Shown: positions 15,948-48,900, counted from the stretch's first letter. The stretch: 64,000 bases of DNA from Oculina patagonica (GCF_052425735.1 NC_135771.1:3968001-4032000), one strand, 5' to 3'. The notes: generated by a model from the sequence alone, not told the origin. Program-made: numbers and translations.

Positions 15948-16520
15948 TCACTTCTTAGCTGGGGCTTTCTTAGCTGCGGCCTTCTTGGCGGGCTTTTTCG
16001 CTGCGGGTTTCTTGGCCGCTTTCTTGGCGGGCTTTTTAGCTGCGGGCTTCTTCGCTGCTGGTTTTTTAGCTGCGGGTTTCTTTGCTGCTGGTTTTTTAGC
16101 CGCGGGTTTCTTTGCAGCCTTCTTTGCCGCTGGTTTCTTCGCTGCCTTCTTGGCGGCGGGCTTCTTTGGTTTGGCGGCGGGCTTCTTCTTTGCAGCGGGC
16201 TTCTTCTTCGGTTTCTTTTCCTTCTTTGTCGGATCCACCTTGGGCAACTTGAAGGAACCTGAAGCACCAACTCCCTTGGTGTGCACAAGTACTCCTTTGT
16301 CAGCGCCTCTCTTCAAGGCCAACTTCAAGTGCGAGCCTACGTTATCACCAACCTTGTAGTTGGCTTTGATGTATTTCTCGATGGCTTGGCGGGAAGAACC
16401 GTTTCGCTCCTTCAGCGCTGCAATAGCAGCCTTGATCATCTCTATATAAGTTGGATGTTCGGCTGGTTTTGCCGGCTTTTTTGCCGGCTTCTTAGCTGGG
16501 GACTTTGCTGCTTCGGACAT
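15948..16520 (-). CDS. H1: Histone H1, replication-dependent
   Basis: Winged-helix globular domain ([37 protein letters not shown]), KKPAA-repeat tail, intronless, followed by a stem-loop. Confidence 0.97.
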
Positions 16521-20473: not shown

Positions 20474-20854
20474 TTAAGCTTTTGATTTCTTCTCGGTCTT
20501 CTTGGGCAGAAGTACAGCCTGGATGTTGGGAAGAACGCCTCCCTGTGCGATGGTGACACCGGCGAGCAGTTTGTTCAACTCCTCGTCATTGCGCACAGCC
20601 AGCTGAAGGTGACGGGGGATGATTCTTGTCTTCTTGTTGTCACGAGCAGCATTGCCCGCCAACTCGAGGATCTCAGCGCTCAAATACTCAAGCACAGCAG
20701 CCAAGTACACTGGAGCACCGGCGCCAACACGCTCTCCATAGTTGCCTTTGCGGAGAAGACGATGGATACGACCAACTGGGAACTGAAGCCCTGCTCGGGA
20801 TGAGCGGGTCTTGGACTTGGTGCCCTTAGCTTTTCCTTTACCGCGACCAGACAT
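20474..20854 (-). CDS. H2A: Canonical histone H2A
   Basis: [22 protein letters not shown]...[21 protein letters not shown]; no C-terminal SQEY, so not H2A.X. Confidence 0.98.
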
Positions 20855-21180: not shown

Positions 21181-21552
21181 ATGGCACCCAAAGTTGCAGG
21201 AAAGAAAGGCGAGAAGAAAGCCGGTAAGGCAAAGGCCGCGGCTGGTGAAAAGAAGAAGAGAAGGGGAAAGAGAAAGGAAAGCTATGCTATCTACATCTAC
21301 AAGGTGTTGAAGCAAGTTCACCCTGACACTGGTATCTCCAGCAAAGCCATGGGCATCATGAACTCGTTCGTCAACGACATCTTCGAGCGCATCGCCACCG
21401 AAGCTTCCCGCCTTGCCCACTACAACAAGAAATCAACCATCAGCTCCCGCGAGATCCAGACCGCCATCAGGCTGCTTCTGCCCGGTGAACTGGCCAAACA
21501 CGCCGTCAGTGAAGGAACCAAGGCTGTGACCAAGTACACCAGCAGCAAGTAA
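21181..21552 (+). CDS. H2B: Histone H2B
   Basis: [27 protein letters not shown]...[16 protein letters not shown]. Confidence 0.98.
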
Positions 21553-23833: not shown

Positions 23834-25169
23834 CAAACTCTTTACGCACGGAAGTAAGGCAGTCAACACTTAAGAAAAGGAGAACGCTGACAGGGGGAGA
23901 AAGTGTTGACTTTCCAGAGCCAGAGGCGGCAGAGCGTTTTGGGACGTGTGTGTGTGTGTGTGTGTGTGTGGGGGGGGGGGGGGGGTAGTATGAGGGGGCT
24001 AAGACTGTCCCAAAAATACTCGGCATTTTTTCATATTTGGAGCTCTTGGAGCAACTTTTTTTCCGTTCTGGCATCTTTTTGTTTTCTGAGCAGTTTCCAG
24101 ACCGAAGATTTTCGAAGATTCTCAGATGTCATTAAAGATGTGAATATTGTTCATCGTGGTGTAAGGGGGATAGGTAATGAACATATTTGGATTCTCAGAT
24201 TGTTTTTCGAAGGCCATATGAACGTCTCCGGTCATTTCTCAAACTTTTCCGAAGATAAACGAAGTTTCCCGAAGACTTCCAAGGAAGTTTCAAAGATGTT
24301 TGAACTCACTCACAAGACGGAATACCTTGACAAACCAATTTTACGCTGCGCTCGCGATATTTTCGACACCAAAACGTGGGAGAGGGCGGTTTGAGCATCC
24401 CAAAACATTTTTGTTTGGGGGGGAGTGCCCCCCCCCTGCTCCGCCGCCTATGCCTTCAGTGGTAAAAGTTGGATTGCATCTATTGCATATGTAAGTTCTA
24501 GATGCATGCATGCGGCAACTTCCCATTATAAAGGCTGATTTCATGTTCAACCACTCAATAACAAATTACTTCTTTTATAAGACATTTATTTTTCTTTAGG
24601 CCCTCTCATACACTGTAGTTTAATGAATGGAAATGATATAACAACTTGACTTGCTAATTATATTAACTAACCTTTCCCTTATAGCTACGTTTTAGGCTTT
24701 AACGTCTCAGCTTGATATAATTTCTATTTCAGTCATAAATGGAGCAAAGATACAATGCTTGTTGAGCCTCATTCAAGGCCAACAACAGATCAGATACATA
24801 TTTAGTTTTTTAAATATTAATCGATTAGTTCTTTACTAAAGTTTATATTTCTCGTTTATGAAAACATTGTGTGCCCTCTTTTTAAGAACGTTGAATACCC
24901 ATAGATTTTGGAGAAATAATTAAAATTAAAGGTTTTTTAAAAACTATTTTTATGTATTCTTATGATAAAATAGATGTTATCATAAAAATAGGATCCTTAT
25001 AATCAACCATAATTGTTATTTTCAACTACTCTAAAAATCAAATTGTTTTTATGCCATAATAAGCAACATAACTTCTATACCCATATATCTTATCTTATAT
25101 ATCTCATATATTTTTTGTTTTCTAGAGGCCTTTTTATCGCTTAGCAGGTTATCCCCCAATGTGCCAATA

Positions 25170-28100
25170 TTAGTTCAAAAATATTTTCAGTTTGGGATTT
25201 TGATTCTGCGTCAGTTTCCAGAGGCGTGTGTCCCAACCAGTAAAGGTAGATGAGGTCTTCAATTCGGTATCGGTTTTTGCACCAAGTGTGTTTGTAGTAC
25301 CGTATTGCTGTTTGCCATAGCTATTGTCTATTCTGCTATAGCGATAATTATAATTTTCTCCGACTAATCCACCCACTCTGTCACTTCCTGAAACCTGTCC
25401 TATGGCATAACATTTTGTAATCGTACCCCAATTGTATCCCACTAACCCGCCAATATACTCCTTGCCTGAAACATTGCCTGTCGCATAGCTATTGTTTATT
25501 TTAACACTACCAGAATGACCACCACCACCACCACTAATGCCCACTAAGCCTCCTATGTAAATCCACCCTGAAACATTGCCTGTCGCATAGCTGCTTAGGA
25601 TCGTGCCAGTAAAGTCTCCCACCAAACCTCCTATATAAATTCTTATTCCTGAAACAGTGCCTGTCGCATGGCACCTTTGGATGGTGCCTCCATATGAAGC
25701 TCCAACCAATCCCCCAACATAGGATCGTCCAGAAACCTTTGCTGTCGCATAGCTATCAGTGATTCTACTATCTGGTTCACCATTGCCAACTAAACCTCCT
25801 ACAGAAAATTTTGTGCCTAAAACTTGTCCTGTGGCATAGCTATTGTCTATTCTGCCATAATTCCGTCCGACTAATCCACCCACTCCGCTTCCTCCTGAAA
25901 CCTGTCCTATGACAAAGCATTTTGTAATTGTACCTTGATTTCTTCCCACTAACCCGCCAATATACAACACCCCTGAAACATTGCCTGTCGCATAGCTATT
26001 GTTTATTTTAACATGGTGTCCAGAACCACTAAAGCCCACTAAGCCTCCTATGTAACGGCGCCCTAAAACATCGCCTGTCGCATAGCTGCTTAGGATCGTG
26101 CCATAATGGCCTCCCACCAAACCTCCTATTTGATTTGCTGTGCCTGTGGTTTTTCCTATTCCTGAAACAGTGCCTGTCGCATAGCAGTTTTGGATCGTGC
26201 CTTGATATAATTTTCCAACCAATCCTCCCACAGCGGATTGTCCAGAAACCTTTGCTGTCGCATAGCTATCAGTGATTCTACTATCTGTGTCACTCAAGCC
26301 AACTAAACCTCCTACGTAATCATATGTACCTAACACTTGTCCTGTAACATAGCTATTGTATATCCTGCCATAATGATGTCCAGCTAATCCTCCTATAAAT
26401 GATGTCCCCTTAACTGATACGTTTTCAAGTCTTAGGTTTTTCACTTGTCCAGTTCTTTCGATCCCCTTAAACAACCCTGTGTTACCACTCCAATGAGTCC
26501 CATTGATCTTCAAATTCAGAATCTTTTTATTGTTCCCATCCAAAATCCCTTCAAAACGTGGCAAAGGAGCAAAGTTAGCAATAGGAGATAGGTCGATGTT
26601 TTGGGTGACTATAAAATATTTGCCTGTATTGTTTTTCCATATGCCTCGTAGTTTTTGCAAGTCGACGATGCTTGCAATTTTATAAGGGTCGTGACTTGTG
26701 CCTTTCCCAGGTCCATCCGTAGCGATACTTCGGCTTGTCACAGGTTTAATGAGTGAAAGTGCTTTGGTACCAGGGGAAGAACAAGCACCGGATTTCATGG
26801 CTGCAATTTCTTGAGTGATCTGAGTTTTCTTTTGTTCAAGCTGCTGGATCTTTGCAGTACACTCCAGTTGGCTTGGGGTTGGATCAACTGCCTTTACTGA
26901 CATTCGAAGAGCTAGAAGTAATGGAAATAAGTGTGATAGATATTTTATGCCTGGTGAATAACTCTGAGTACATTTCAAATTCTTCATTTGTAACTGTCTC
27001 TTAGACAGACTGTCCAATAATCTGGTTGTATAAATTAGGGTGAATGATTTGATTATCGAACTACGAGTGCCGAACAGTTCGATTCGGGACATAAGGTGTA
27101 CAATGGTCTCATAGTGATTTTGTTATGCGCGAGAATCGAGTCTGGAAATTTTTGCGTGATTTCTTTCGATCACTTTTTCGCTAAAAGAAGTCTGACTGGG
27201 TACATGGAATAGAGGTTCGATATATTGTTGAGTCAAGAAACTGTACGTGATCAAACAGTGTGAAATCCCGATTTCTTGAACCTCATGATAACTCAAACCA
27301 AAAGTCATTCTCCCTCCTCAAACACTGTAATTTTACCCTAATTTCTCGAAATACACTCTTTTTTTTTATAAGAATAACAAAATGTTTTGTGAAACATTTG
27401 AGAAGAAAAATAAGCGATAAACAGTTTAGCACGCACAGAATTCTGTGCGTGCTAAACTGTTTATTTAAAATCTTAATATGCTAATATATTATCACACCCT
27501 AGATCACTATATAAGCCTAAACTCCGTATTATAATTTTAACTTGATAATGATGATATGGCGTCATCGAAACGTCGTTCTATTTTCCTATCGCTTATTTTT
27601 CTTCTCAAATTTTTATAAGAACCTTTTTATAAGAACGTCGAGGCTGAAAAAAGGCCAAAATTTAAGAACATCCTAAAAACGTACCCAAGGATGAAATTTG
27701 GTTAACTGACAAATTTTATTTTCCTATTTGTTGTAAGTGACAAATATATGTACGAAATGAATACATCTTCATTCCAATCCTGAACCGAGTAACCAACATT
27801 GTCATCACTCATTGTTGACGTGAACATGTACATTTAGGTTAGGAATGAATTTACTGCAATACCACTTTGTTTATAAAATTTAAAAAATAAGAACATTTAA
27901 AGATCATTATTGGCTCAAATCTTCGAAAAAGTTAAGAACGGTCATTCTCAGTCAAAAGATAAGACGTAAAAAAGAGTGTATCCAAATGTAGAGTAGAGAG
28001 AGAGAGAGAAGTATTAAAAATATATCATTCGAGCTGAATTAATGACTTCGGCACTGATGCAAAGCTGACCATAATTTGCAACAAAGATCTAAATTGACTT

Positions 28101-28439
28101 ACTTTGTCATGACTCATTGTTGACGTGAACATGTACATCTAGGTTAGGAATGAATATGCTGCGATACCACTTTGTTTTTAAAATTTAATAATAAGAACAT
28201 TTTAAGAACATTATTGACTCAAATCTTCGAAAACGTTTAGAACGTTCAGCCTCGGCCGACAAATAAGAAGTTTTTATATATAAAAAAGTGAATCCAAATG
28301 AATAGTAGGGACTGAGAGAAGTATAAAAATATATCATTTGAGCTCATTAAAATTTACCTTTGTTCTTTTTGTTCGTATCTGCCATCGCTTTCACGAAAGT
28401 CAACACAACGACTAGGAAAATAATTTCCTTTAAACGCAT
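25170..28439 (-). CDS. Secreted GLUG-repeat beta-helix protein of prokaryotic type, 2 coding exons, ~607 aa
   Basis: Exon 28439-28358 encodes MRLKEIIFLVVVLTFVKAMADTNKKNK (signal peptide) and ends at a phase-1 donor G|GTAAAT. Acceptor ttatttccattacttctag at 26912 joins in frame to exon 26911-25170. The protein has a GKGTSHDPYKI N-cap, FEGILDGNNKKILNLKI, 13 GGL(V/A)G..I.NSYATG.VSG repeats and a KTDTELK..TFTGWD..W..PKL C-cap. Confidence 0.85.
27525..27600 (+). mobile_element. Penelope-type terminal fragment with variant hammerhead-like core, inside the GLUG intron
   Basis: TTGATAA-T-GATGA-tatggcg-TCATC-GAAACGTCG at 27542-27575. Confidence 0.4.
27800..28345. repeat. Diverged tandem duplication, period ~303 bp, in the GLUG intron
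   Basis: actcattgttgacgtgaacatgtacat.taggttaggaatgaat at ~27806 and ~28112, collinear through aaaaatatatcatt.gagct. Confidence 0.8.
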
Positions 28440-31400
28440 CTTGCTTTTCTTATGGATCACAAACTTGGCTGGCTGACCTAGAATGGAGAAAAAATAACAA
28501 GTTAAAGTTGCATTTTTGTTAACAGAAGAAATAATTGTCCAGAGTTTATTTTAGATGTTTACGTGTCCAATTTTTTAAATGCAACAACTAAAAGTATCAT
28601 GTTATTCGTTTCTAATGAGAACGTCCAATTTTTAGTCTCCGCTGTCACTAGACCTTCTTCCTTTTTAAAGACTTTTACAACACAATATACAACACATTGT
28701 ATAATAACCTGAATTCTACACGCATTTTAATTGGTTCTTACTTGTGATCTATAAGAGTACAGACACATAGATGACGTCACGCGGTAGTGTGACTCGCGCC
28801 CGTGATCAGAGTTCATAGTCCAAATCAGAGTTGTCGGAAAAGTTTTTTAAACTCGCGGGGCCACAACAAAGCAAAAAAGTTAAGTCACCCTAAGTCGTTC
28901 TAAGTTGTTTTATATATAGTATAGATATTTTCTGTAACAATGCTTTATGGTGTACCATGATGATTCCCATGTACATGTATACCACAACTGTACTTAGGTC
29001 GGTCAAAAAATTGCCTTAAGTCGCTCAAAATCGCCCAAAGTCGCCTAAAATCGCCTTAAATCGCCCAAAATCGCCCGTAATTTCGGACAAAGTCGCCTTT
29101 AGTCGCCCAAAGTTACGGCGACTTTGGGTCCCAGAGTAGGCCTACAATGCAACACGTTTGGCAGTCTCCTTTCATATTTATTGCGAACATTTCGACGTCG
29201 CACGGTTTTAATTTTATCTAAAACGTACTTTGGCCGGGACAAGTACCACATTGACAGCCGACTGTTAAAAGAAAACTTTAAAACTTTTACGTCAGTGATT
29301 TACGATGACAAAGTTTCTCAAATAGTGCCTCGAAAAGAAAAAATTCAGTGATTTGGACGTAATCAAACTTTCTGTTGAGGAAAATATTTCACGAAATAGT
29401 GCCGCGAAAAGAAAAATAAACGACATTTTAATTTTAATTTGAAATGGCACTACTTTGTGAAAGATTTCTCGGACAAAGGAGAAAAAGACCGCAAGCCACG
29501 ATATGAAACTTTTGATATATCGGTTTGGTTAGTACATTTTTGTTAAAGACTGGAATATAAGCCATCGGAAGAATTGTTTGCGTGCTCCCTGCAATGCATC
29601 GTGTGTGACGTCGTTGACATTTTCCAAAAAGGCTTTTAAAGTCGTCCTTGTCAATTTAAAAAATCTATCAATCACCTAAAGAGAAAAAAATAAATTAAAA
29701 ATCAAACTTTCTGTTGAGGAAAATATTTCACGAGTATATTCGTAGACATCTAAAATTTAAGTCAAACAATCGGTCGTTTGGAGCAAGAAATGGCGATAAA
29801 CTGCCGTACGGGAGTCCTGTATGAGGGTCGCGTACGCATTTGCGCGCGGGGGGCCGCAAAAGCCTATATATTACATATTATATACACAGTATTCGACCAC
29901 TGAAAAAGGGGACATTATAAAGCGATGAAGTGACGGTTCGTGTTTGGAGTCCTTTGACTTTCAACGCACAAGCTTTAACCATGCAAATTAATTGTGGACA
30001 GGAAGCACATCTGCTACGTATGATCTGTATATTCATAGGCCGGACGACCTAGGCATCTTGTGAATATAGATCTCGCATACCTCGCACAATACTAGCCTAC
30101 ATAGCAAGTCAAGAGCAGCGGGGATGTTCCTCATAATATTTTATTGCCTATTATGCCTACAATCCAAACTTCTCTTCTTTAAAATGAGGAAACTTTGCTT
30201 ATCAAGACACGTCCAAATCACTGAAGCAACGAACTTGGTAAAAATGGTGCGTCTTCATGGGCTTCCAAATACCCTTTTTTAATCGGGCCTTCCCTTCTGG
30301 TAACAAAGCGGCTATGTTACAAGAAAGATGTGCAAGAGAATCATAACTATATGTATCTCAATAATTTTGAGACTTTTATTAAACGGGCAGACAGCTCAAG
30401 GATAAAGTGACTATGAATCCGCACGATCCACAAACAGTAACAGTTAGTGACAAATAGAAAAAAATATTAGAACATAGGCTTATTGGGAGAGAAGGGAAAA
30501 TTTTAACTACAAAAATCGATTGACCATCCATGTACATATCAAAACAGAATAGAAATATCAACAATGATTAAACTTTCGTAAAAGCGTTTTTTCGGAATGC
30601 TAGGGTTTTTTTTTGATAAACAGAGTTCAAGAAGACCCGAAAGGGGTAAAATTGCAATTGAAAAGTCTTTTCTAAACGTATATCTTACCTAATAAATCAT
30701 GAAGCGGGAAAATACCCGGGTTTCCTTACTGCCAGAATCCAAGAGGTAGAATTTTTCATTGAATTTGAAGATAAACCATTTCATTTTATTATCAAATTTA
30801 TTTTCCCTGCGGCTCACCTATGAGTGAAATATGTTTTGCAATCTTATTATTTTTTTAAACGAAATGGAACAGTTTTCAGTGAGAATTTTCCTCGTGTTCT
30901 CATTTGGCAATATCCACGAAAAAGCGAGAAACTTTATTACGTTGCTGACTCACCACAATGTAAGTTTCTTGTTTAGTTTTCCTCCTTCTTCTAAGCCTTC
31001 GTTACTGGTTAGCTCACTGTAGCAAACTGAATGTGATCGGTGGCTTTCTGTAATTTACGAGGTTGTAATTATCAAAGATAAGATATATAACTGAAACCTA
31101 TCAAGTAGGAAAATTGATTTTAAGTGCTGCTTACAACTATCAAGACTTGCTGGCGCCAGCAGAACCTGGAGACAGAGCATGCCCAGTTGCATCCATCTTG
31201 GGTGGTCATCTTAATATTTATGATAACGTGACTTTTCGCCAAGTTAAAATGGAGCAAATTTTAAATTGTTATAAAAACTTCAACTGTAAAAACAGTCTGA
31301 AAGAGTGTACATGCTATTAAACAATCATTACAGTCTTCCCTTTTAGAACTCGTTTAGGGTTAATGCAGTAAAAATGACGCTGAATTTGCAATTTTTAAAC

Positions 31401-33780: not shown

Positions 33781-35141
33781 CATGCATGCATGCGGCAACT
33801 TCCCATCATAAAGCCTGATTCATGTTCAACCACTCAATAACAAATTTCTTCTTTTTCAGACATTTATTTTTCTTTAGGCCCTGTCATACACTGAAGTTTA
33901 ATGAATGGAAATGATTTAACAACTTGACTTGCTAATTATATTAACTAATCTTTCCCTTATAGCTTTATACATTTTAGGCTTTAACGTCTCAGCTTGATAT
34001 AATTTCTATTTCAGACATAAATGGAGCAAAGATACAATGCTTGTTGAATCTCATTCAAGGCCAACAACAGATCAGATACATATTTCTTATTTAGTTTTTA
34101 AAATATTAATCGATTAGTTCTTTACTAAATTTTATATTTCTCGTTTATGAAAACATTGTATGCCCTCTTTTTAAGAACGTTGAATACCCATAGATTTTGG
34201 AGAGATAATTAAAATTAAAGGTTTTTTTTAAAAACTATTTTTATGTATTCTTATGATAAAATAGATGTTATCGTAAAAATAGGATCCTTATAATCAACCA
34301 TAATTGTTATTTTTAACTACTTATAAAATCAAATTGTTTTTTATGCCATAACAAGCAACATAATTTCTACACCCATGTATCGTACCTTATATATCTTATA
34401 TATATTTTGTTTTCTAGAGGCCTTTTTTATCGCTTAGCAGGTTATCCCCCAATGTGCCAATATTAGTTCAAAAATATTTTCAGTTTGGGATATTGATTCT
34501 GCGTCAGTTTCCAGAGGCGTGTGTCCCAACCAGTAAAGGTAGATGGGGTCTTCAATTCAGTATCGGTTTTTGCACCAAGTGTGTTTGTAGTACCGTATTG
34601 CTGTTTGCCATAGCTATTGTCTATTCTGCTATAGCGATAATTATAATTTTCTCCGACTAATCCACCCACTTTGTCACTTCCTGAAACCTGTCCTATGGCA
34701 TAACATTTTGTAATCGTACCCCAATTGTATCCCACTAACCCGCCAATATACTCCTTGCCTGAAACATTGCCTGTCGCATAGCTATTGTTTATTTTAACAC
34801 TACCAGAATGACCACCACCACCACCACTAATGCCCACTAAGCCTCCTATGTAAATCCACCCTGAAACATTGCCTGTCGCATAGCTGCTTAGGATCGTGCC
34901 AGTAAAGTCTCCCACCAAACCTCCTATATAAATTCTTATTCCTGAAACAGTGCCTGTCGCATGGCACCTTTGGATGGTGCCTCCATATGAAGCTCCAACC
35001 AATCCCCCCACATAGGATCGCCCAGAAACCTTTGCTGTCGCATAGCTATCAGTGATTCTACTATCTGAGGAACTCGTGCCAACTAAACCTCCTACAGAAA
35101 ATTTTGTGCCTAAAACTTGTCCTGTGGCATAGCTATTGTCT
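33781..35141. repeat. Segmental duplicate of 24501-25850 (GLUG 3' CDS plus 3' flank)
   Basis: Near-identical and collinear from atgcatgcatgcggcaacttccc to gcatagctattgtcta, same orientation. Confidence 0.95.
34463..35141 (-). pseudogene. 5'-truncated second copy of the GLUG gene, open frame but no start
   Basis: In-frame DNSYATGQVLGTKFSVGGLVGTSSSDSR...PKLKIFLN*; homology stops abruptly at 35141 against a GC-rich, MITE-like fragment. Confidence 0.8.
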
Positions 35142-35250
35142 ACGCGACGCGACGCGCGAGGGTGTCTCGGCCTCGCGTGTCGCGTTTTGTTAAGCGAGAT
35201 GATTTTTTCCCCTGAGGAAAAAAAAACTTAGGGACTACTCCAGTCTCGTC

Positions 35251-35548: not shown

Positions 35549-38500
35549 TTACTTTGCCTTCTTTTTCTTCTCCTTTGTTTTACTCTTTTCATCCTGAATT
35601 TCTTCTTCACTCTTTTCACCTGGAGATGCTATTTCTTGGCAGTCAACAGACAGCATTTCGTTAAAACGCGAAAAGGGTGCCAAATTTTCGCGATCGAGAA
35701 ATATATCGGAGATAACTTCGCCGACTCTTTCCTTCGTCAAACTTCCGCCTAGCGTTTTAAACAGCCGCTGTTTTGGTTTAGCAAACAGCAACACCGGAAT
35801 GTTGTCGGGAAAGATGCCAAAAACTTCGCCATATTCAGGATGGCAAGACGCGTTGACCCAGAGATAGTGTAGAGGTTTATCTGCAAGACGTGAAATAATC
35901 ATGAAACCTTAGTTACGCAGACAAACTTCTCCCTAAGTTTTCACCTATTGCCTCCTCCAAAAGACTTGACCCATTTTGAGAGCACTGGGATAAGATATTT
36001 AGATTTTGAGTTTAACGCCCATATCATTTTGGTACAGTATATTTCTATTCCCTTATCAAGATATCTCCACCGGGCTCACAAACTAGCGTTTTTAATCAGG
36101 ATTCCAAGTTTGGGCTCCAGGACACCCGCCCCCCCCCCCCCCCCCCCCCCCAAACGGGGCCCCACGCACTGCGGAGAGGGCTCCAAGCAGCAAAACAGTG
36201 GGACTCCAGGCTCCACAGCGAAAATGTTACGGCTCCCGACTCCGGCCACCATCCCCATTTGGGACCCTGTTAAGGCATAAAATAAATCTTATAGGAATAA
36301 AATGCTTAAAAAACAGCTTTACCTTTCATTTCCGGCATTTTCTGTAGTTCTTTAAACAACTTTAACGCCTTCTTGACCCCTTTCTTCTCCTTGCCATCAA
36401 CAAAGTAGATCAAACACAAACCAAGTGCGGAATCTGTACACATTCTTTTATGATTCTTGAATGTAATTTCTTTCTCCTTAGCCTTGTCTTCATCTTCTTG
36501 AAAACTACCCTCAGACTCCCTATCTAGTACCTCTTTGACATCTTCTACGAAAAATTCCCTCAAGCCAACTTTTCCTTTGAATTTTTTCGCATCGGGGTGG
36601 TCTAGGTAATGTTTCTCGTGGACGGAGAAGAAAAATCTTGTCAAGTTAAGGTACGAGATTTTACCATACTCTTTTGTATCATAATACACTGAGCTAAACG
36701 TGATCCTTGCTTTATCAGCGCTCTCTGTTGCAATCATGACCAGGATCGCTGGAAGCTTTCTCACTTGGAAATTGTGCTTTATCTCTTGACTTGGCTTATT
36801 CAGAACACCAAAGTTGAAAAATTTGGAGTATTTTAGAGCTATGGCACGGATTAGAGGTGATGTGTCGGATTTTTCTGAAAGAGACAATAAAGAAAAATAA
36901 TTACCATCAGAATTGCACATAAACAAAATGTCTATTTATCATCAAAACTCTGCATATTTCAAGCGAAGCTCCCTTTAAGTTGAGTTGCACTCGTTGAGCT
37001 CTCATGAGCTTTGATTGGTTCAGAGAACTGAAAAATCGTGTAACATCTAACCAATCAGAGACAACGTGCCATTTTTAACCAATCAGCAAACCTGAAACCA
37101 ATCATGACACGGCAGGCGTGCGCTTTCCCGCGTTTGGCGGCGGTTGCACGTTCTTGCTTCGCGTTCTGATTGGCCTATTGTGGTATTTGGGTTTGTTGAG
37201 ATTGGTCGGTATGATTCCTTTAGCTTTTGTTTTACCACAGTCATTCTATTTCCGGTTCCGTTTAAGGTGGCTGATAACAGTTTTAGGCATTTTCAAGTCC
37301 TTATACTTTGATAGTTCATTACTACAATTCTTTATCAGTTCCCATTTGATTAATGGTATGACAAAAATTGCTCAATCATTGGTCGACAAGTTGTGACCAT
37401 TTTATTGACATTAATATTTCAAAATATAAGGTGGCGCTGATCCACTCTGACAGAATCTTTTTAAACTTTGCCAAAAGTTGTATTATGGCATACTGATCAT
37501 AACTTAACAATAAAAAAATGCAGGTCACCGAGTTCATTTTTGAGATATTAGCATTGGAGGCTAAAATCAATAGTGTTTTTAACAGGCTATACTGTTGCTA
37601 TGGTAACATCTTGTGTCAAGAAAATGATCACAACTTGTCGACCAATGATAGGGCATTTGTTTCATACCATTTTTGTAATAGCAGTTGATAAAGTTGTTGT
37701 AGTACTGAACCATCAAAGTATAAGGTCTGGAAATTTACTGAAAACAGTTATCAGCCACCTTAATTTGATTACACTCCGGATTTTTTCTTCCCAAAACTGA
37801 AAATCATTAACTGTTACCTGTTAGTAGCAAGACTGGCATTTGTAGAGGCTTAGCTGCGTATCCTCGCTGCACGCACTGCTGTAGTTCCTCCATTGTTTTA
37901 ATCTTGCAGGTTTCATCCGGCAGACTCTCCAGGGCAACATTTTCAGCTTCTGAGCGAGATTTAACGTCCTTCTTTTCGGCTGATTTTATTTTGTAGCCAC
38001 CATAAGGAAACACGCGGGCGACTGGGTACTTTTTATTCTTCTGAAGAAAGCCCTAGACATTTAACAGGAGTAGGTATTAAATGAACAATAGGGTCGCGAG
38101 TTGAAAACAAATTTAAGTATCCGAACGATCAAGTCTTACGGTGCTAAAATATTTTCTCATTCTCACATAATTTCGCGAGTACTAAATTTCGCGATTTTGA
38201 AAAAATTACGAAATTTAAACTCGCGAAATATAGACACGAAAAGTTTAAATTGCGAAATTTAATGCCGTTTGATATCAATAAAATAATAAAATTCAATGTG
38301 CTTTATTACAGTTATTCCAACAAGTCTCAGCTTCATGTTTAGGAGTTTTTTGTTCGATTTTTTTTTCGTCAGTTATCTTCCACTGCATCACTCTCACTGT
38401 ACAAACTGTCCTCTGCAGCTAAGTTCTTCAAAATCTCGCTTGTGCAGTCGTAGATGACATGTACCAATCGGGTATCTTAACTGTGGAATACCTTATGCTT

Positions 38501-43127: not shown

Positions 43128-45704
43128 TTATCTTATTTTTATGTAGCATTCAATAAATTTAAATGATACATCCATAAGGTGCGTCTGTTTGAAATATTTT
43201 GATTGAAGGCCCTTTTTAATACCTTAATGACCGATAACCCTACCCTTTCATAATTTACCTAAACTTGTGAAATCCTAGACCCTTTTATACACCTGAAGCA
43301 TGAAAAAGGTACCCCTTTCAGGCAGAGCCTCCCCGTATAGGCCATTATAGGGAGTACCCCCCCCCCCCCCAGTGTCATGGTCAGTGGCCTCCACATGTTG
43401 CTGGATCATGTTTGGCTCCATGTGACATAATGAGTTCCACTAGTGCTTGCTTCTTCACTGTACATCAAAGGGCAGTTTTTGCATGTCACTCACTTATCTT
43501 ATGCACCTGCAGCACATGGCTGTATAGCTAGTAAATATTTTTCATGTAGGTCTGTAATGGTATCTACCTGACATCCCACACTATTTATTTAAAATTATAG
43601 ACTTGATTACTTACAACTTGTTTAGACATGTCAATACCATGCACTTTACCAGTGCCTTGTTCCACTTTTTTCAAGGCATTATGTAATCCAACTCCAGGAC
43701 CGAAACCCACTTCAAGAACATTGTCATTAGGCTGAATATCAAGGTGTTTTACGGCTTCTGCCTCTAGGACAACATTATACTTTCTAAGAACTGTCTAGAA
43801 AAATGAGAGTACGGTTATTTAATGTAGTAACAAACAAGTGTATTCTCTACAACCAGGGCCGCAACTATCAAGAGGCAAGACAAGGCACTTACCTTGTCTT
43901 AATATTTTATCCAAGATTAAAAACAAAATATGTTTTTTTTGGAAAATAATCCCAGTTGAACAAGACTGATTTTTCTCAAGAAATACCTCATGAAAAATGT
44001 CTCTGAAAGAGATTCATAGCTTCTAGATTTCAAAAATTTTCTGGAGGGCATGCGCCCAGAAACCACTAGCAAAATTTGCAAAGGTCTGGTTACGGCCCTG
44101 CTACAACCCATTACTTGAATATAATTAATATAGACTAAGATAGGTCTATGTTGGGCCATGCAGTGGCCTATACTACCAGAGCTTATCCCAGTTTCTGTGG
44201 CATTAAGTCACAGAGTATTCTACTCCACCAAGAAGTGATGCTAATCCAAAGCAAGGTCATCTCCCTGCCATGAGGGACTCCCATATGAAAATGTCAGGGA
44301 TACTTGTTGAAAAATTTGAATTAAATCTTGAAAGAAGACTAATCTCAAGCTTCTTGACCCCTTTAAGATATTCCACGCCTGATTAGTCCATACATAACAC
44401 GGTACATGGGAGCACTTCTTATTTCTTCATATGCAACCCTAAATGAGTCCTTGACAACTAACTACCGCAAAACACAAAGTGAGACCAAAATTGCATCCCT
44501 GCTCTGTTCATACGGGATTCCTCCCAGGTTAGTCCCCACCCCCCAGCATGAAATGGTCTTAACTTTGCCGGTACCCATTTTAACTCCTGGGTGAGAAGGA
44601 CTGTGAGAGTTAAGCGTCTTGCAAAGACCCCAGCCAGGGCTCAAACACAGACCATTATTTTGATCTAGAGTACAGCATGTTAATCAGTAGTCCACCGTGT
44701 CAACCAAATAACTTATCCAAAAGATCACCAATTTTCCACTTATGTACTGTATGGGTTGTCTCTTATCAGTCCAAAACTAGTGGACATCTCTACTCCCCTG
44801 CTCCAAAAAAGGAGAACACATCGACTACCAAATTTCTCGCATTGCCTGCCCCCCCCCCCCAACCAAAAGAATAGCCCACTTATTGGCTGAAATAAGTGCG
44901 AAAATAAATACTTTTTAAAATTCAGTAGACAGATACTGGGAGACTTGGTCTGTATCCTAGACACTACTAGACAAACTAGCTAGGAGGGTCTAGGGGACTT
45001 ATCTTGACATACCGGTATATCAGGGCAATATAAATGCATTTAGTCAGTTCATTTTCACATTTCAGCAGAGGCTGAGAGTCTAAAATTAATAAACTTGTAT
45101 AAGACTTGCATAATATAAGTAATCATGGGGTGATGCAGAAATCTTCCCTCCGAAGACCTAGAACTTTTCTTATGCACCAATCGATGTTAAGCCCGAGGGG
45201 GGGGGGGTCGGGCTAACCACAGGAATTTGATCTTGAGGTCAGTCCCCAGGGTAGGGATCTTGATTGTATGTGATGTTCCCAGGGTAGGGATTTTGTTCAT
45301 ATATGATTCCCTGCAACAAAGTTTGAAGGACAAATGACCACCTTCCCTTGCTACCGGGTGGGAATTTTGACTAATTATTGTGTCCCGGGAGGTGTGTGGG
45401 GAATTTTCCTTTTTTCTAAAGAAAATGTCAAAATTCCCACCTCATGCCCGACCCCCCCCCCCCCCCAACACCCTCTGGCTTAACATTGATAGGTGCATTA
45501 TTTAGGGTTTGGTTGTGATCCATCCACATGTGGTTCGCCGAAGTATAGCGATCCACCGAAGTCATATTACGTTGCGACCCCTTCGACAGTGTACAACAAA
45601 TACATCTATGTTTGCCTCACCAATATAAAACGCCCTGTGATTCCTTTTGGTTCTCGAAGATTCTTAGCAATCAAGTTTGAAAACAACTCCACAAACTTCG
45701 CCAT
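41569..45704 (-). CDS. Class I SAM-dependent methyltransferase (Methyltransf_11/UbiE-like), 3 exons, 218 aa
   Basis: Exons 45704-45621, 43794-43615 and 41961-41569, all phase 0 GT-AG. Motif [12 protein letters not shown], then [33 protein letters not shown] and [10 protein letters not shown]. Confidence 0.9.
42106..42141. repeat. (ATT)n microsatellite
   Basis: Read directly. Confidence 0.9.
45173..45497. mobile_element. Harbinger-type MITE
   Basis: TIR TGCACCAATCGATGTTAAGCC / GGCTTAACATTGATAGGTGCA; TTA TSD. Confidence 0.7.
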
Positions 45705-45904
45705 TCTCTTGGGATTACCATCGATTCCTACCCAGGCTTTACGCCAATAGTTTATTGGTTCCCAGGCCTAGCCGAGTGCGAGCTTTGATCACCGGTTTGT
45801 TGAGGATCTTCCGTAATGTAATCAAACTTTTCAGACTCGTTTCTTGGCATTTTTACGACTACAGGCTCGCATCTTTGCTGCTGTGTGATCCAAGGTGTTC
45901 CAAG

Positions 45905-48900
45905 ATGAGTGCTGCACCGTTTACGGTGGAGATGATCTTTGTGTTTCTTCTCACATTGTGTCTTCTTCATCAATATGGAAATTGGCGAAAGCAACACTGG
46001 CTTGTGACCATAGCTGTCTTTATTGCTTGGTATTTCTCGTTTCTAATCGTCTTCATTCTTCCTTTAGACGTTTCAGCGGTAAGTTAAGTCGTTTCTAACG
46101 TTAAACTACCTACCATTACTGTATTTATACCCGGTTGTAGCGAAATGTAAGCTTATTTTGAAACTCTAGTCGACGTCGATTTCATCACATCAATGTAGAT
46201 TTTTATAATCTTAAATTTATTAAGCCTATCTGTCAGCCGATTTTACGTCGAGCTACTGCATAAACTTATTACTAAAGAAAAACAGCGTTTCCATATTTTC
46301 TTCACAAGCAGACAAACTTTATACCAACAATGTTTGTCATATTTTTTTTTATCGTTTAGACTTACTATAACAAATGTTTGAAAGATGCTAAAGTGCACTT
46401 AGTACCTACGACGGCGCCGCTTACAGTGTCGAACTCCTCGAGTAATGTCTCAGAGAGTAACTCAAGCAAAACAGCTCAATCAGATTGTGAGAAACCCTGG
46501 AGTTATTTACCAGAGCAAGTTCTTCCTGATCTCTGGCGGGTTGTTTACTGGTCCTCCCAGATACTTTCATGGTGAGTACTTCAAAGACGTGAAAATGTAA
46601 ATAGAAAATCAGTCTATGCATATTTTAGGATCTTTGACAAATGATCTTCTTGGGATATCATTCACTGCCAGCAACAAAGTGAAGCGTATTTTACAATTTG
46701 TAACAGCAGCATTTGTGCTTGTGCAACCAAAATCGCCAGGAAAAAATTGGAAATGTTTAATCAGTTCTAAGGTTACTATAACCCAGCTTTGCACCTGTAT
46801 GGCATGCTAAAATAAAATCTCATTAACAAAAGGATGAGAAATCTTTTTAAACCAAAATGGTGATTATTAAAGTAATATAAGAAAATCATCAATACTTATC
46901 ACGTGCCAATTTAAAATTATATACACCAGTATTAAACATATTAATTTAAATAGTTTAAAAATCAATTATTGATTTACAGACAGAATGAAATATTTGTCAG
47001 TCTTGATCTGCAGTTGAATCCCGATAATTTGAACTTTCAAGGAAAATCAAAATCAAAAAAGGTTCAAAATATCGGAGTTCTAGTTATCGAGGGTTAAATT
47101 AGTAAGAAACAACCTGGAGGGGAATCGGAAAGGTTTCAAGTTAGTGGGAGGCACGACTTATTGAGGGTTCAAGTTATTGAGATTCAACTGTATTCACGAC
47201 CACTGCTTAGGGATGTAGCTAATTAACCAGAAATTAACTGGTGAAATTAGCCTCGATTTAGCGCCCTCCTTCCAATAAGCGCTCCCTTCCGAATAACCGC
47301 CCCCCTTCGAATGTGTTTTTGTAAATAAGTGCCCCTATTCCAATAAGCGCCCCCATTCTAACAAGCGTCCCCATGCCCCATTCTTAAAAGTGCCCCTTTT
47401 CTAATAAGCGCCCCCTATTGCGGATAACTGCCCCTACTGAAGTCATCGACGTCGAATAGATAAACGCATGATGAACATTTACCATACCGTACATATATAT
47501 ATTTACTGCTAGCTGAACTTTCAACAATTTGCTAATATTTATAGAAGTTTTGTTTTTTGAACATTTGGTTGTTTGCCAAAAGTAAATAAGCGCCCCGGGC
47601 GCTAAATCGAATCATTACGGTACTTCTTTTAATAATTAATAGTTTCTTTACCCCAGATCTGTCTACTTGTTTGTGAGCATTATGAGAAGAAATTAAATCT
47701 TGATCAATCTTGGGGTTAATTTATTTTTCTTTCTTTTTAAGGTTTATCCTTCCTATCATGCAGTCCTACTCATATGCTGGAGATTTTACTGTACAAGGTA
47801 AAATCAAAACAGCTCTGTATGAGAATGCCCTGTGGTATGGCAGCTATCTCGTCATCTTTGGTATTCTTCTGATCTATGTTATTGTGAAGCCTGATCTTCA
47901 TTTAGATGGGTGAGTATATATTGTCTAATCTTGTCTGCCGATAAGTGGTGCTTCCATGAAAATTTAAATAGTTTTAATTAATACATGATTAAATAGGATT
48001 TGTACAGACTGTCATGAAAAACCTGGAAAGTCATGGAATTTTAGAATTTCATTTTCCAGACCTGGAAAGTCATGAAATTTAAGTTTAGGCCATGGAAAGT
48101 CATGGAAAATGGTACTGATTGTACAAAATAAATAAGGCAGGTTATTTTTTGTGAAGAAAAGGTTTGAACCCGAAATCAATACAATTTTTGAGAATTTCCA
48201 AGAAAAATGGTCTAATTTAGATCATGGAAAACTTTGAAAAGTCATGCAAAAGGTCATGGAAAGTTATGGAATTTCAAATGCTCAAGGGATAAGGTAGCCA
48301 TCGTAAAAAACTTATGTTCAACTGTACATTGCATTCACAGGATCTCTAGTAGATGTGGGGTGGGGCTGCTCATCCTCTCGCTTAGGGATGTATAGAGGAA
48401 TTTTGGTCTCACTTAGGGTGTTCAGGACAGATCGCTAATATTTTTCATACCCGATTGTTAGTCAAGACCAATCAGACATGAAAAATGGTATCCTTAAAGA
48501 TGATTTCCAGTCCGTACTGCACAATCTCCGCCTGCAATGTTTGTGAGTCTCACAAACAGGAAGAATGTTAACTAGCAAAAATAAAAATTCCGGGACAAAA
48601 CTTTCCTTTTTCTTCATAATTTTATTAACGCCAGATATCCTTGCGAAACAATAATAACGAGTAAAAGAAGCTCGACGCTATTTCAAATGGACGTTTTAGC
48701 TCATCATGAATTCTTGAACAAAACGATCCGTAATGGCGAACTAAAAAACTTCATGTATGCTATCACCGAAGTGTAACATTTCAACGAATTCAAAACAAAA
48801 ATGAAAACAAACCCTGAGTCTGCGCAGTACAGACTGGAAATCATCTTTAAGGGGTCAGAAAGGCTTGAACCATGCCTACAATGGAGGTAAAATAGTTGGG

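Follow-up and report, generated by a model that had tools for sequence, protein, structure and literature searches.

Proteins with GLUG motifs (PF07581) are prokaryotic surface proteins, for example of Planctomycetota MAGs, in which an N-cap is followed by ~27-residue GGLVG turns and a C-cap. The only solved structures that match the protein described here significantly are the helices of M26 IgA1 proteases (6xja, 6xjb, 7jgj, 7uvk) and BACOVA_03286 (3n6z). Collectins and ficolins recognise their ligands through heads that are C-type lectin or fibrinogen domains. Transfers in which a bacterial gene stands among host genes in several coral species were described by Bhattacharya et al. 2016 (PMC4878875); as far as its main text and Table 1 go, the primary function of the candidates is given as extending stress-response pathways, and GLUG, IgA, adhesin or haemagglutinin are not named. 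In the literature on GLUG, coral horizontal gene transfer and beta-helices we found no paper on a GLUG family in corals.

We analysed a window of 64,000 nucleotides from the stony coral Oculina patagonica (NC_135771.1:3968001-4032000), which carries a GLUG gene on its minus strand (see the table below; all positions are those of the window). The encoded protein shares both caps, the GGLVG turns and the predicted fold with the prokaryotic proteins, at 35-44% identity over >500 residues, but is devoid of their accessory and anchoring domains (T9SS, PASTA, Flg_new, SLH and others) and, unlike them, has a coral-only coiled-coil/Cys stalk and a eukaryotic-type exon for a signal peptide, set apart by a spliceosomal intron. 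Relative to the M26 proteases and BACOVA_03286, identity falls to 15-22% and neither an M26 peptidase nor another catalytic domain is present. Its likeness to collectins and ficolins is one of architecture only (signal peptide, Cys-bearing oligomerising helical neck, recognition head, variable surface), with no homology, a beta-helix as head, and putative oligomerisation and ligand binding. The event would be of the same kind as the transfers in PMC4878875, whereas the product, in contrast to the candidates of its main text and Table 1, is a predicted extracellular repeat protein in a diversifying multigene family. We propose that the coral gene is functional and descends from a bacterial one, with a probability of roughly 0.75 for origin, secretion and binding model as a whole; the gene model and the bacterial ancestry, taken by themselves, are highly probable.

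Features of the GLUG locus of O. patagonica, in window positions
Feature	Position	Strand	Content or evidence
Leader exon	28358..28477	-	short 5' UTR, ATG at 28439, 27 codons + one base
Predicted cleavable signal peptide	28380..28439	-	MRLKEIIFLVVVLTFVKAMA; hydropathy + inspection
Spliceosomal GT..AG intron, phase 1, 1,446 nt	26912..28357	-	RNA joint 26911<->28358, run X2
Main coding exon, 1.74 kb, stop 25170-25172	25170..26911	-	ORF, Pfam GLUG, RNA contigs, AlphaFold model
Coral-specific alpha-helical, heptad-like stalk	26790..26876	-	model helix + match survey
N-cap, GPGxGTxxDPYKIA ... ILDGNNKKILNL ... LENVSVKG	26406..26726	-	cap profile
Thirteen GLUG turns, GGL[VA]G, period 26-34 residues	25335..26393	-	regex count
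C-cap, RIDNSYGK ... TDTELK ... FTGWDTRLWKL ... NPKLK	25173..25334	-	cap profile
3' untranslated region	24585..25169	-	RNA contigs cover 24689-25239; candidate AATAAA 24590-24585
Partial duplicate: last 227 codons + ~670 nt downstream DNA	33782..35142	-	similarity to 24502-25849

The open reading frame visible on the minus strand spans 25170-27092 (640 aa), and its main exon holds stalk, linker and the entire GLUG beta-helix. The initial annotation had derived from the sequence a leader exon at 28477-28358 whose phase-1 donor fits the acceptor at 26912, and a spliced protein of 607 aa. This model held: MRLKEIIFLVVVLTFVKAMADTNKKNK is read directly after the ATG of the leader exon, donor GT (28357/28356, phase 1) and acceptor AG (26913/26912) flank an AT-rich intron (GC 0.32) with repeated elements inside, the split codon g+ct restores Ala, and the spliced CDS of 1,824 nt keeps its frame intact over all 607 codons. 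Splicing was observed in a Logan contig of run X2, which aligns with 0 mismatches across 28358-28473 and then joins 28358 to 26911; the skipped 1,446 nt end in CT..AC on the plus strand, that is, GT..AG on the gene strand. This joint is carried by a single short assembled contig of depth 4, which extends 30 nt into exon 2; that its run is RNA is only a guess by the tool. A contig of X1 likewise ends at the acceptor of the main exon, and depth is zero in the intron at 27058-27254 in all four runs. RNA contigs cover the main exon in these four runs patchily, at depth 3-18; expression is thus low and patchy, and contigs at 95-99% likeness possibly derive from paralogues or alleles. At the 3' end the contigs reach down to about 24689, upstream of the AATAAA that had been noted at ~24590 and lies at 24590-24585 as a candidate signal.

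Two further transcript structures were discarded. Read-through translation from the ATG at 27092 would yield the 640-aa product, its first 60 codons being intronic, with neither a signal peptide nor RNA coverage. A 63-nt skip from 26706 to 26770 (21 codons) in one X4 contig was rejected as a splice and taken as an allele or paralogue indel, because the contig has several mismatches and the GT..AG ends lie on the wrong strand. An additional intron in the 5' UTR had also been proposed. The X2 contig carries 53 extra letters 5' of 28473 with no continuation into the adjacent DNA, which fits such an intron, although the upstream exon was not located; the 5' boundary of the leader exon falls within 28472-28477, with candidate acceptors at 28478/28477 or 28474/28473.

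Pfam GLUG scores 192.6 bits (cut-off 20.5; E 7.6e-59) over nine scored stretches, and the 1.74-kb intronless exon indeed encodes the 13 GGL[VA]G turns and both caps attributed to it at the outset, with a six-turn super-repeat duplicated as turns 2-7 and 8-13. Cap profiles built from coral sequences matched 109 bacterial relatives at the N-cap, which starts there at median residue 39, and 95 at the C-cap; both caps occur in 94. AlphaFold modelling of the exon-2 product, not of the spliced 607-aa protein, returned a beta-solenoid preceded by a disordered linker and, at the N-terminus, a helix (pLDDT 89.2, pTM 0.84). The solenoid is right-handed, its best PDB matches are 3n6z and the IgA1 proteases, and in AFDB its neighbours are GLUG proteins, with TM reaching 0.75, so that the structural comparison envisaged in the initial annotation came out in favour of a GLUG helix. 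GLUG was alone above the Pfam threshold, with the M26 catalytic domain absent, and an NCBIfam ZmpA match scored 18 bits where 3000 are required and was confined to the repeats.

Beyond coral paralogues, every match to the protein was bacterial or archaeal, at 30-45% identity, with Planctomycetota making up most of these relatives, and the closest non-coral genomes were Planctomycetota MAGs of a free-living type (35-44%), which lends no support to the symbiont donor initially suggested. In word-seeded searches, in which about a quarter of the proteins carry names, the named animal matches were confined to Oculina, of the suborder Vacatina, to Montipora and Porites, of the suborder Refertina, and to one contaminant-like annelid contig. 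A quick tree search over 170 columns recovered the coral sequences (43 rows) as one clade amid bacterial diversity (SH-aLRT 99, stem 0.74), divided into an Oculina-type and a Montipora/Porites-type subclade. The existence of these two branches implies an old transfer that O. patagonica shares with other corals. The prokaryotic affinity anticipated for the phylogeny was found; the acquisition is neither recent nor private to this animal, with both suborders carrying the family. The bacterial sister of the coral clade is weakly supported. With the nearest non-coral relatives all bacterial or archaeal and the coral sequences in one long-stemmed clade, horizontal transfer, as first proposed, is the best explanation for the origin of the gene.

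What precedes the bacterial-type module is of coral making. The predicted signal peptide has a charged n-region (MRLKE), an 11-residue hydrophobic core (IIFLVVVLTFV, Kyte-Doolittle maximum 3.48) and a c-region with small residues at -1 and -3, forming the A-x-A cleavage motif KAMA|D; hydropathy and inspection therefore bear out the signal peptide assigned to the leader exon, and we infer that it is cleaved and the protein secreted. Two O. patagonica paralogues, P0001 and P0003, have a homologous hydrophobic leader, FIIVVLTF, joined at the corresponding point; among relatives generally, O. patagonica and Porites-type proteins have a signal peptide and one Montipora protein a membrane anchor. 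The stalk, modelled as a helix at residues 12-40 of the exon-2 product, is flanked by Cys45 and Cys71 (spliced-protein numbering) and followed by the disordered linker; it would serve in oligomerisation. The first 96 residues had no bacterial match, versus 48 coral matches. By this survey, the first ~90 residues (leader and stalk) are a coral addition, the bacterial-derived part beginning at about residue 90. The coral-only stalk, with coiled coil and CxC, is already present in both coral lineages, and this protein has the motif A(L/M)KS(C/G)AC in common with Montipora and Porites-type proteins.

The separate leader exon has a narrower distribution. In paralogues of another coral assembly the acceptor context is conserved, and for two of them similarity over 1.2 and 4.2 kb of upstream DNA did not reveal a leader exon. 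In Porites evermanni the DNA runs without interruption from leader through stalk to helix; consequently, the separate leader exon is a trait of the Oculina-type lineage, neither family-wide nor the founding step of domestication. The idea that the signal-peptide exon had domesticated the gene therefore stands in so far as the spliced exon is real in Oculina, and fails as a general account.

Sequence variation among family members points to the outer face of the helix. Hypervariable positions lie at offsets -4, -3, -2, +5 and +7 relative to GGLVG, a register defined on an independent paralogue set. In variable-register codons dN was 0.85 and dS 0.16, a ratio of 5.25 (bootstrap 2.5-17.6), and a second comparison gave 2.0 (0.98-4.3), as pairwise Nei-Gojobori estimates over ~62 codons that loop indels, misalignment or gene conversion between repeats could inflate; framework codons gave 0.47-0.71. 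The exposed loop positions appear to be under diversifying selection, a pattern compatible with an adhesin, lectin or microbe-binding role. Binding as the function of the coral protein is a tentative assignment, somewhat short of even odds.

A bacterial-type module in a long intronless exon is also what would be seen if the GLUG ORF of an associated bacterium had been joined to coral DNA by the assembler. Against this, RNA shows the exon joined to the leader exon with a GT..AG intron removed, its GC3 of 0.35 is near that of the AT-rich host genome with CpG depleted, its first ~90 residues are coral-only, and near-identical or orthologous genes reside on a 25.6-Mb O. patagonica scaffold, a 74-Mb Montipora chromosome and a 308-kb Porites contig. 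Moreover, contamination is excluded, to the point of a negligible residual probability, because histone H1, H2A and H2B genes and an LMBR1-like exon flank the GLUG gene in a window free of N gaps, in line with the flanking animal genes noted in the initial annotation. That the family is instead an old vertical eukaryotic one, lost everywhere but in stony corals, is very improbable: although it is old within Scleractinia and the survey of other cnidarians was indirect, the only named match in other animals is the annelid protein P0084, on a 20-kb contig and with the bacterial-type architecture PF09479 plus GLUG, whereas bacterial and archaeal homologues with both caps number in the thousands at 35-45% identity and enclose the single long-stemmed coral clade. 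Low RNA depth would also be expected of a transcribed relic with noise-level expression and no function of its own, as would degenerate copies. Indeed, the partial copy 9 kb away (95.7% nucleotide and 96.5% amino-acid identity to its source) is without leader, stalk and N-cap, although GLUG is still detected in it (Pfam E 1.9e-19), and the Porites evermanni copy has two homopolymer frame slips. We nevertheless hold a relic to be quite improbable given the intact frame of 607 codons, an O. patagonica protein 97% identical across the part covered by that protein's gene model, framework dN/dS below 1 and an architecture kept in both suborders.

Two other explanations concern what the protein does and where. 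Foldseek neighbours of the model include tailspike endoglycosidases, PL6 alginate lyases and a capsule lyase, which could suggest that the protein, like phage tailspikes, is a carbohydrate-active lyase or hydrolase built on a beta-helix and does not act by binding. These neighbours match poorly (TM about 0.3, E above 1e-3) and reflect the generic right-handed beta-helix, whereas the significant matches are to 3n6z and the IgA1 proteases, whose GLUG helices are non-catalytic; Pfam and NCBIfam detected no catalytic family, and the most variable positions are spread over all turns with no one conserved pocket, making an enzyme improbable. The hydrophobic leader might alternatively be an uncleaved signal anchor holding the protein at the membrane, as hinted by the Montipora protein, where a 20-residue transmembrane-like segment follows a cytoplasmic-type N-terminus. 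The core found here, however, measures about 11-13 residues, begins at residue 6 and precedes A-x-A, as in cleaved signal peptides, and we consider an anchored product unlikely.

For the preferred reading, the following course may be envisaged. An early stony coral would have received into its genome, from a bacterium, a complete GLUG module with N-cap, repeats and C-cap. This would have preceded the divergence of the two scleractinian suborders, and the nearest living relatives of the module are Planctomycetota. The module would then have been fused in DNA to the coral-made N-terminal stalk, a short Cys-flanked coiled coil with a flexible linker, and this copy would enter the secretory pathway through the cleavable signal peptide on the exon 1.45 kb upstream, joined across the phase-1 GT..AG intron. 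After maturation, the most likely product is a beta-helix that is secreted and that oligomerises through its stalk. The exposed stripe of this helix, to which every turn contributes five positions around the GGLVG corner, would contact a ligand outside the cell, with microbes or the matrix as plausible places for it. The family has multiplied into paralogues diversifying at the stripe positions. In its most far-reaching and doubtful form, this course would have turned a bacterial adhesin-type helix into a multigene set of stalked recognition receptors, secreted or anchored, with the exposed positions of each turn diversifying under positive selection and leader exons swapped between secreted and anchored forms; if true, corals would recognise microbes or symbionts innately by means of a scaffold acquired through horizontal transfer.

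Few bacterial genes have become functional genes of animals, and every such case illustrates how foreign DNA comes by a promoter, introns and a secretion signal. Several such steps can be seen in the coral family: the capped bacterial module, the coral stalk fused to it in DNA, and a leader that is contiguous in one coral lineage and a separate exon in the other. The non-synonymous excess at the surface is a pattern typical of molecules facing microbes. Since the family is present in both suborders, has multiplied and shows this surface excess, it is a testable candidate for a role in coral-microbe or coral-symbiont recognition.

The minus-strand GLUG gene of O. patagonica, with its spliced leader exon and its bacterial ancestry, is very likely as modeled here. 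The open reading frame at 25170-27092 (minus strand) is uninterrupted, and its product matched the Pfam GLUG family with 192.6 bits (E 7.6e-59). That search returned no second family above its threshold, and an NCBIfam search yielded only the ZmpA repeat region, as a sub-threshold match. Direct counting gave 13 GGL[VA]G turns, as the initial annotation had it, with periods of 26-34 residues, and turns 2-7 and 8-13 make up a duplicated six-turn unit. The leader exon proposed upstream, with its AG-bounded start, ATG, phase-1 GT donor and polypyrimidine/AG acceptor for the main exon, has all these features when the sequence is read by eye. Joining both exons keeps the frame across the junction, where the split codon g+ct specifies Ala, and renders 1,824 nt, that is, 607 codons.

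Coordinates of the GLUG gene signals, its truncated duplicate and the neighboring animal genes (window positions)
Feature	Position	Strand	Remarks
Leader exon start	near 28477	-	AG-bounded, read by eye
ATG	28439	-	followed by MRLKEIIFLVVVLTFVKAMADTNKKNK
GT donor	28357/28356	-	one extra base before GT (phase 1)
Acceptor AG	26913/26912	-	preceded by a polypyrimidine tract
Histone cluster (H1, H2A, H2B)	15948-16520, 20474-20854, 21181-21552	-, -, +	Pfam; 4-9 kb from the GLUG gene
Exon-like ORFs of neighboring animal genes	35549-35902, 36306-36926, 45677-46087	-, -, +	one LMBR1-like
Truncated GLUG duplicate	33782-35142	-	last 227 codons plus about 670 nt of downstream DNA; 95.7% nucleotide identity

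Contigs assembled from four RNA-type sequencing runs (X1-X4), whose RNA nature is guessed, were placed on 24300-30200. One X2 contig follows 28358-28473 without mismatch and then passes straight to 26911, matching the predicted junction to the base and leaving out 1,446 nt whose plus-strand ends, CT..AC, read GT..AG on the gene strand. This splice support is thin, consisting of one contig with 30 nt on one side, and is backed by two O. patagonica paralogue protein models, in which a homologous hydrophobic leader (MAISCFAVTFIIVVLTFSPET) is joined at the same LRM... position, and by conservation of the acceptor sequence in two paralogues of another coral assembly. Coverage of exon 2 is patchy (depth 3-18), one X1 contig ends at the acceptor, and depth is zero at 27058-27254 in all four runs. 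Given this zero depth, the X1 stop and the X2 junction, the 640-aa frame that begins with the ATG of 27092 was rejected as the transcribed form. On its 5' side, the X2 contig carries 53 extra letters that do not continue into the adjoining DNA, which fits the additional 5' UTR intron claimed initially, its candidate acceptor being either 28478/28477 or 28474/28473. The AATAAA reported at ~24590 is likewise present (24590-24585, minus strand), although contigs extend only to about 24689, making it a candidate 3' end signal. Two stretches, 27255-27648 and 28634-29224, show very high summed contig depth (up to several hundred) in all four runs, together with numerous loose ends and an opposite-strand joint at 27419/27586. 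Both resemble dispersed repeat or transposon copies, the first lying within the intron and the second 5' of the leader exon. Separately, an X4 contig lacks 63 nt (21 codons) of the linker region, at 26706-26770, and has some ten further differences; it probably represents a shorter-linker paralogue or allele.

Contamination is excluded as the source of the gene. As argued initially from the animal flanks, it lies among histone genes and an LMBR1-like exon, in a window with zero N gaps, and the top database matches are O. patagonica proteins encoded on a 25.6-Mb scaffold, including one with 97% identity across 61% of the query, the part that its gene model covers. The GLUG exon has a GC3 of 0.35 and a CpG observed/expected ratio of 0.55, and the intron a GC content of 0.32 versus 0.38 for the window. 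The truncated duplicate is devoid of leader, N-cap (the start of the beta-helix) and stalk, the coral-only helical segment with cysteines ahead of it, and its frame is open through to the same stop.

The match list comprises 16 coral-type proteins at 56-97% identity and then falls to 30-45%, where Planctomycetota, Omnitrophota, other bacteria and some archaea appear, many with bacterial accessory domains; prokaryotic best matches, as anticipated, are thus borne out beyond the coral-type proteins. The best matches in species-representative prokaryotic genomes were mostly to Sedimentisphaerales, Phycisphaerales and Pirellulales MAGs (35-44% identity), and protein-atlas and AlphaFold-DB neighbors concur with bacterial and archaeal relatives. 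Coral-built profiles of the N-cap and of the C-cap, the opposite end of the beta-helix, both recur in 94 bacterial proteins, in which the N-cap begins at a median of residue 39, directly after those proteins' own leaders. Coral residues 1-96 match 48 coral proteins and had no match in 80 bacterial loci or in bacterial proteins. Since the caps are common to bacteria and these first 96 residues lack a bacterial match, the bacterial-derived part extends from about residue 90 to the C-terminal end, with leader, helical stalk, CxC-type motif and linker as coral additions. Stalk and helix lie in one exon, so this fusion arose in DNA, not by splicing.

An AlphaFold2 model of the exon-2 product, built on a 37-row alignment (pLDDT 89.2, pTM 0.84), contains a helix at 12-40, a disordered segment at 39-66 and, from about 70 to the end, an unbroken beta-solenoid. 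Foldseek retrieved BACOVA_03286 (3n6z, E 3.8e-7) as well as IgA1 proteases, matched in their beta-helix portion, the remaining matches being weak and generic beta-helices (tailspikes, Ag43 and PL6 lyases; TM about 0.3), and a PDB sequence search concurred. Identity as an IgA1 protease was rejected because the peptidase domain of those enzymes is absent from the coral protein.

When just the stalk and N-cap region of a Montipora protein served as seed, 70 proteins were retrieved; those with names are from Montipora foliosa, Porites evermanni and O. patagonica, which represent both scleractinian suborders. In a quick IQ-TREE tree of concatenated caps (131 rows, 170 columns), all 43 coral-type rows fell into one clade (SH-aLRT 99, stem 0.74) made up of Oculina-type (97) and Montipora/Porites-type (94) groups; six rows tagged 'other' within it are cluster members of coral-type proteins, and its bacterial neighbors are weakly resolved. 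This fits a single acquisition predating the suborder split. In a word-seeded search, where most proteins are unnamed, no named match came from Acropora, Pocillopora, Stylophora, sea anemones or other animals except for an annelid protein, which lies on a 20-kb contig, has bacterial-type architecture and looks like contamination.

Many Porites-type proteins start with MHTSSGSLRPIAFFLSLFFAYTG... and then have a coiled coil of greater length, ALKSCAC and a Pro/Thr linker, and one Montipora protein has a transmembrane-like anchor in place of that leader. The genome of Porites evermanni has ATG, leader, coiled coil and helix in one unbroken run (locus L081, 5887-7621); judged from this arrangement, the separate leader exon is a trait of the Oculina-type lineage, gained through intron gain or leader replacement, and not universal in the family. 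The L081 copy also has the linker unit PAGPGTGTMQDPYKIAT in tandem repeat and contains two homopolymer frame slips, attributable either to errors in the assembly or to decay of the copy. Porites-type proteins (P0148, P0154, P0155, P0162 and relatives) occur in long and short forms, differing by about 50 residues directly after the signal peptide (YACTGGEVDFQ...NGVTE), which may reflect alternative splicing or paralogue indels.

The framework of ten Oculina-type paralogues is near-invariant (entropy <=0.3 bit at most register positions), and mean entropy is 1.2-1.8 bits at offsets -4, -3, -2, +5 and +7 from GGLVG; eight paralogues forming an independent set gave the identical five offsets. Nei-Gojobori counts between the window gene and L082, a paralogue from another coral assembly, gave a dN of 0.85 and a dS of 0.16 at variable-register codons (ratio 5.25, bootstrap 2.5-17.6) and a framework ratio of 0.71, the corresponding ratios being 2.0 (bootstrap 0.98-4.3) and 0.47 against L083, a second paralogue from that assembly, all to be read in light of few synonymous sites, loop indels, possible inter-repeat gene conversion and the common history of the paralogues. 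The model's strand pattern puts +5 and +7 two residues apart on the strand that follows the GG corner, so both should point to the same outward face.

The predicted signal peptide, with a charged n-region, an 11-residue core of mean hydropathy 3.48 and A-x-A before Asp21, would grant entry to the secretory pathway, and secretion of the GLUG protein is likely. The heptad-like helix, with Cys45 and Cys71 on either side, could link chains in twos or threes, and the beta-helix would offer a ligand an extended stripe of diversifying residues; binding, not catalysis, is our best guess only as to function. Relatives are publicly annotated as 'GLUG domain-containing protein' (Porites) or 'putative Gly-rich membrane protein Bcell_0380' (Montipora). 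Literature searches retrieved no publication on the coral GLUG family, and nothing on it stands in the main text of the 2016 paper listing coral gene transfers (Bhattacharya et al. 2016, PMC4878875). The coral GLUG gene is a new, well-documented case of a known type of event, bacterial-to-cnidarian gene transfer, to which the family adds the interest of a diversifying multigene family with variable leader exons.
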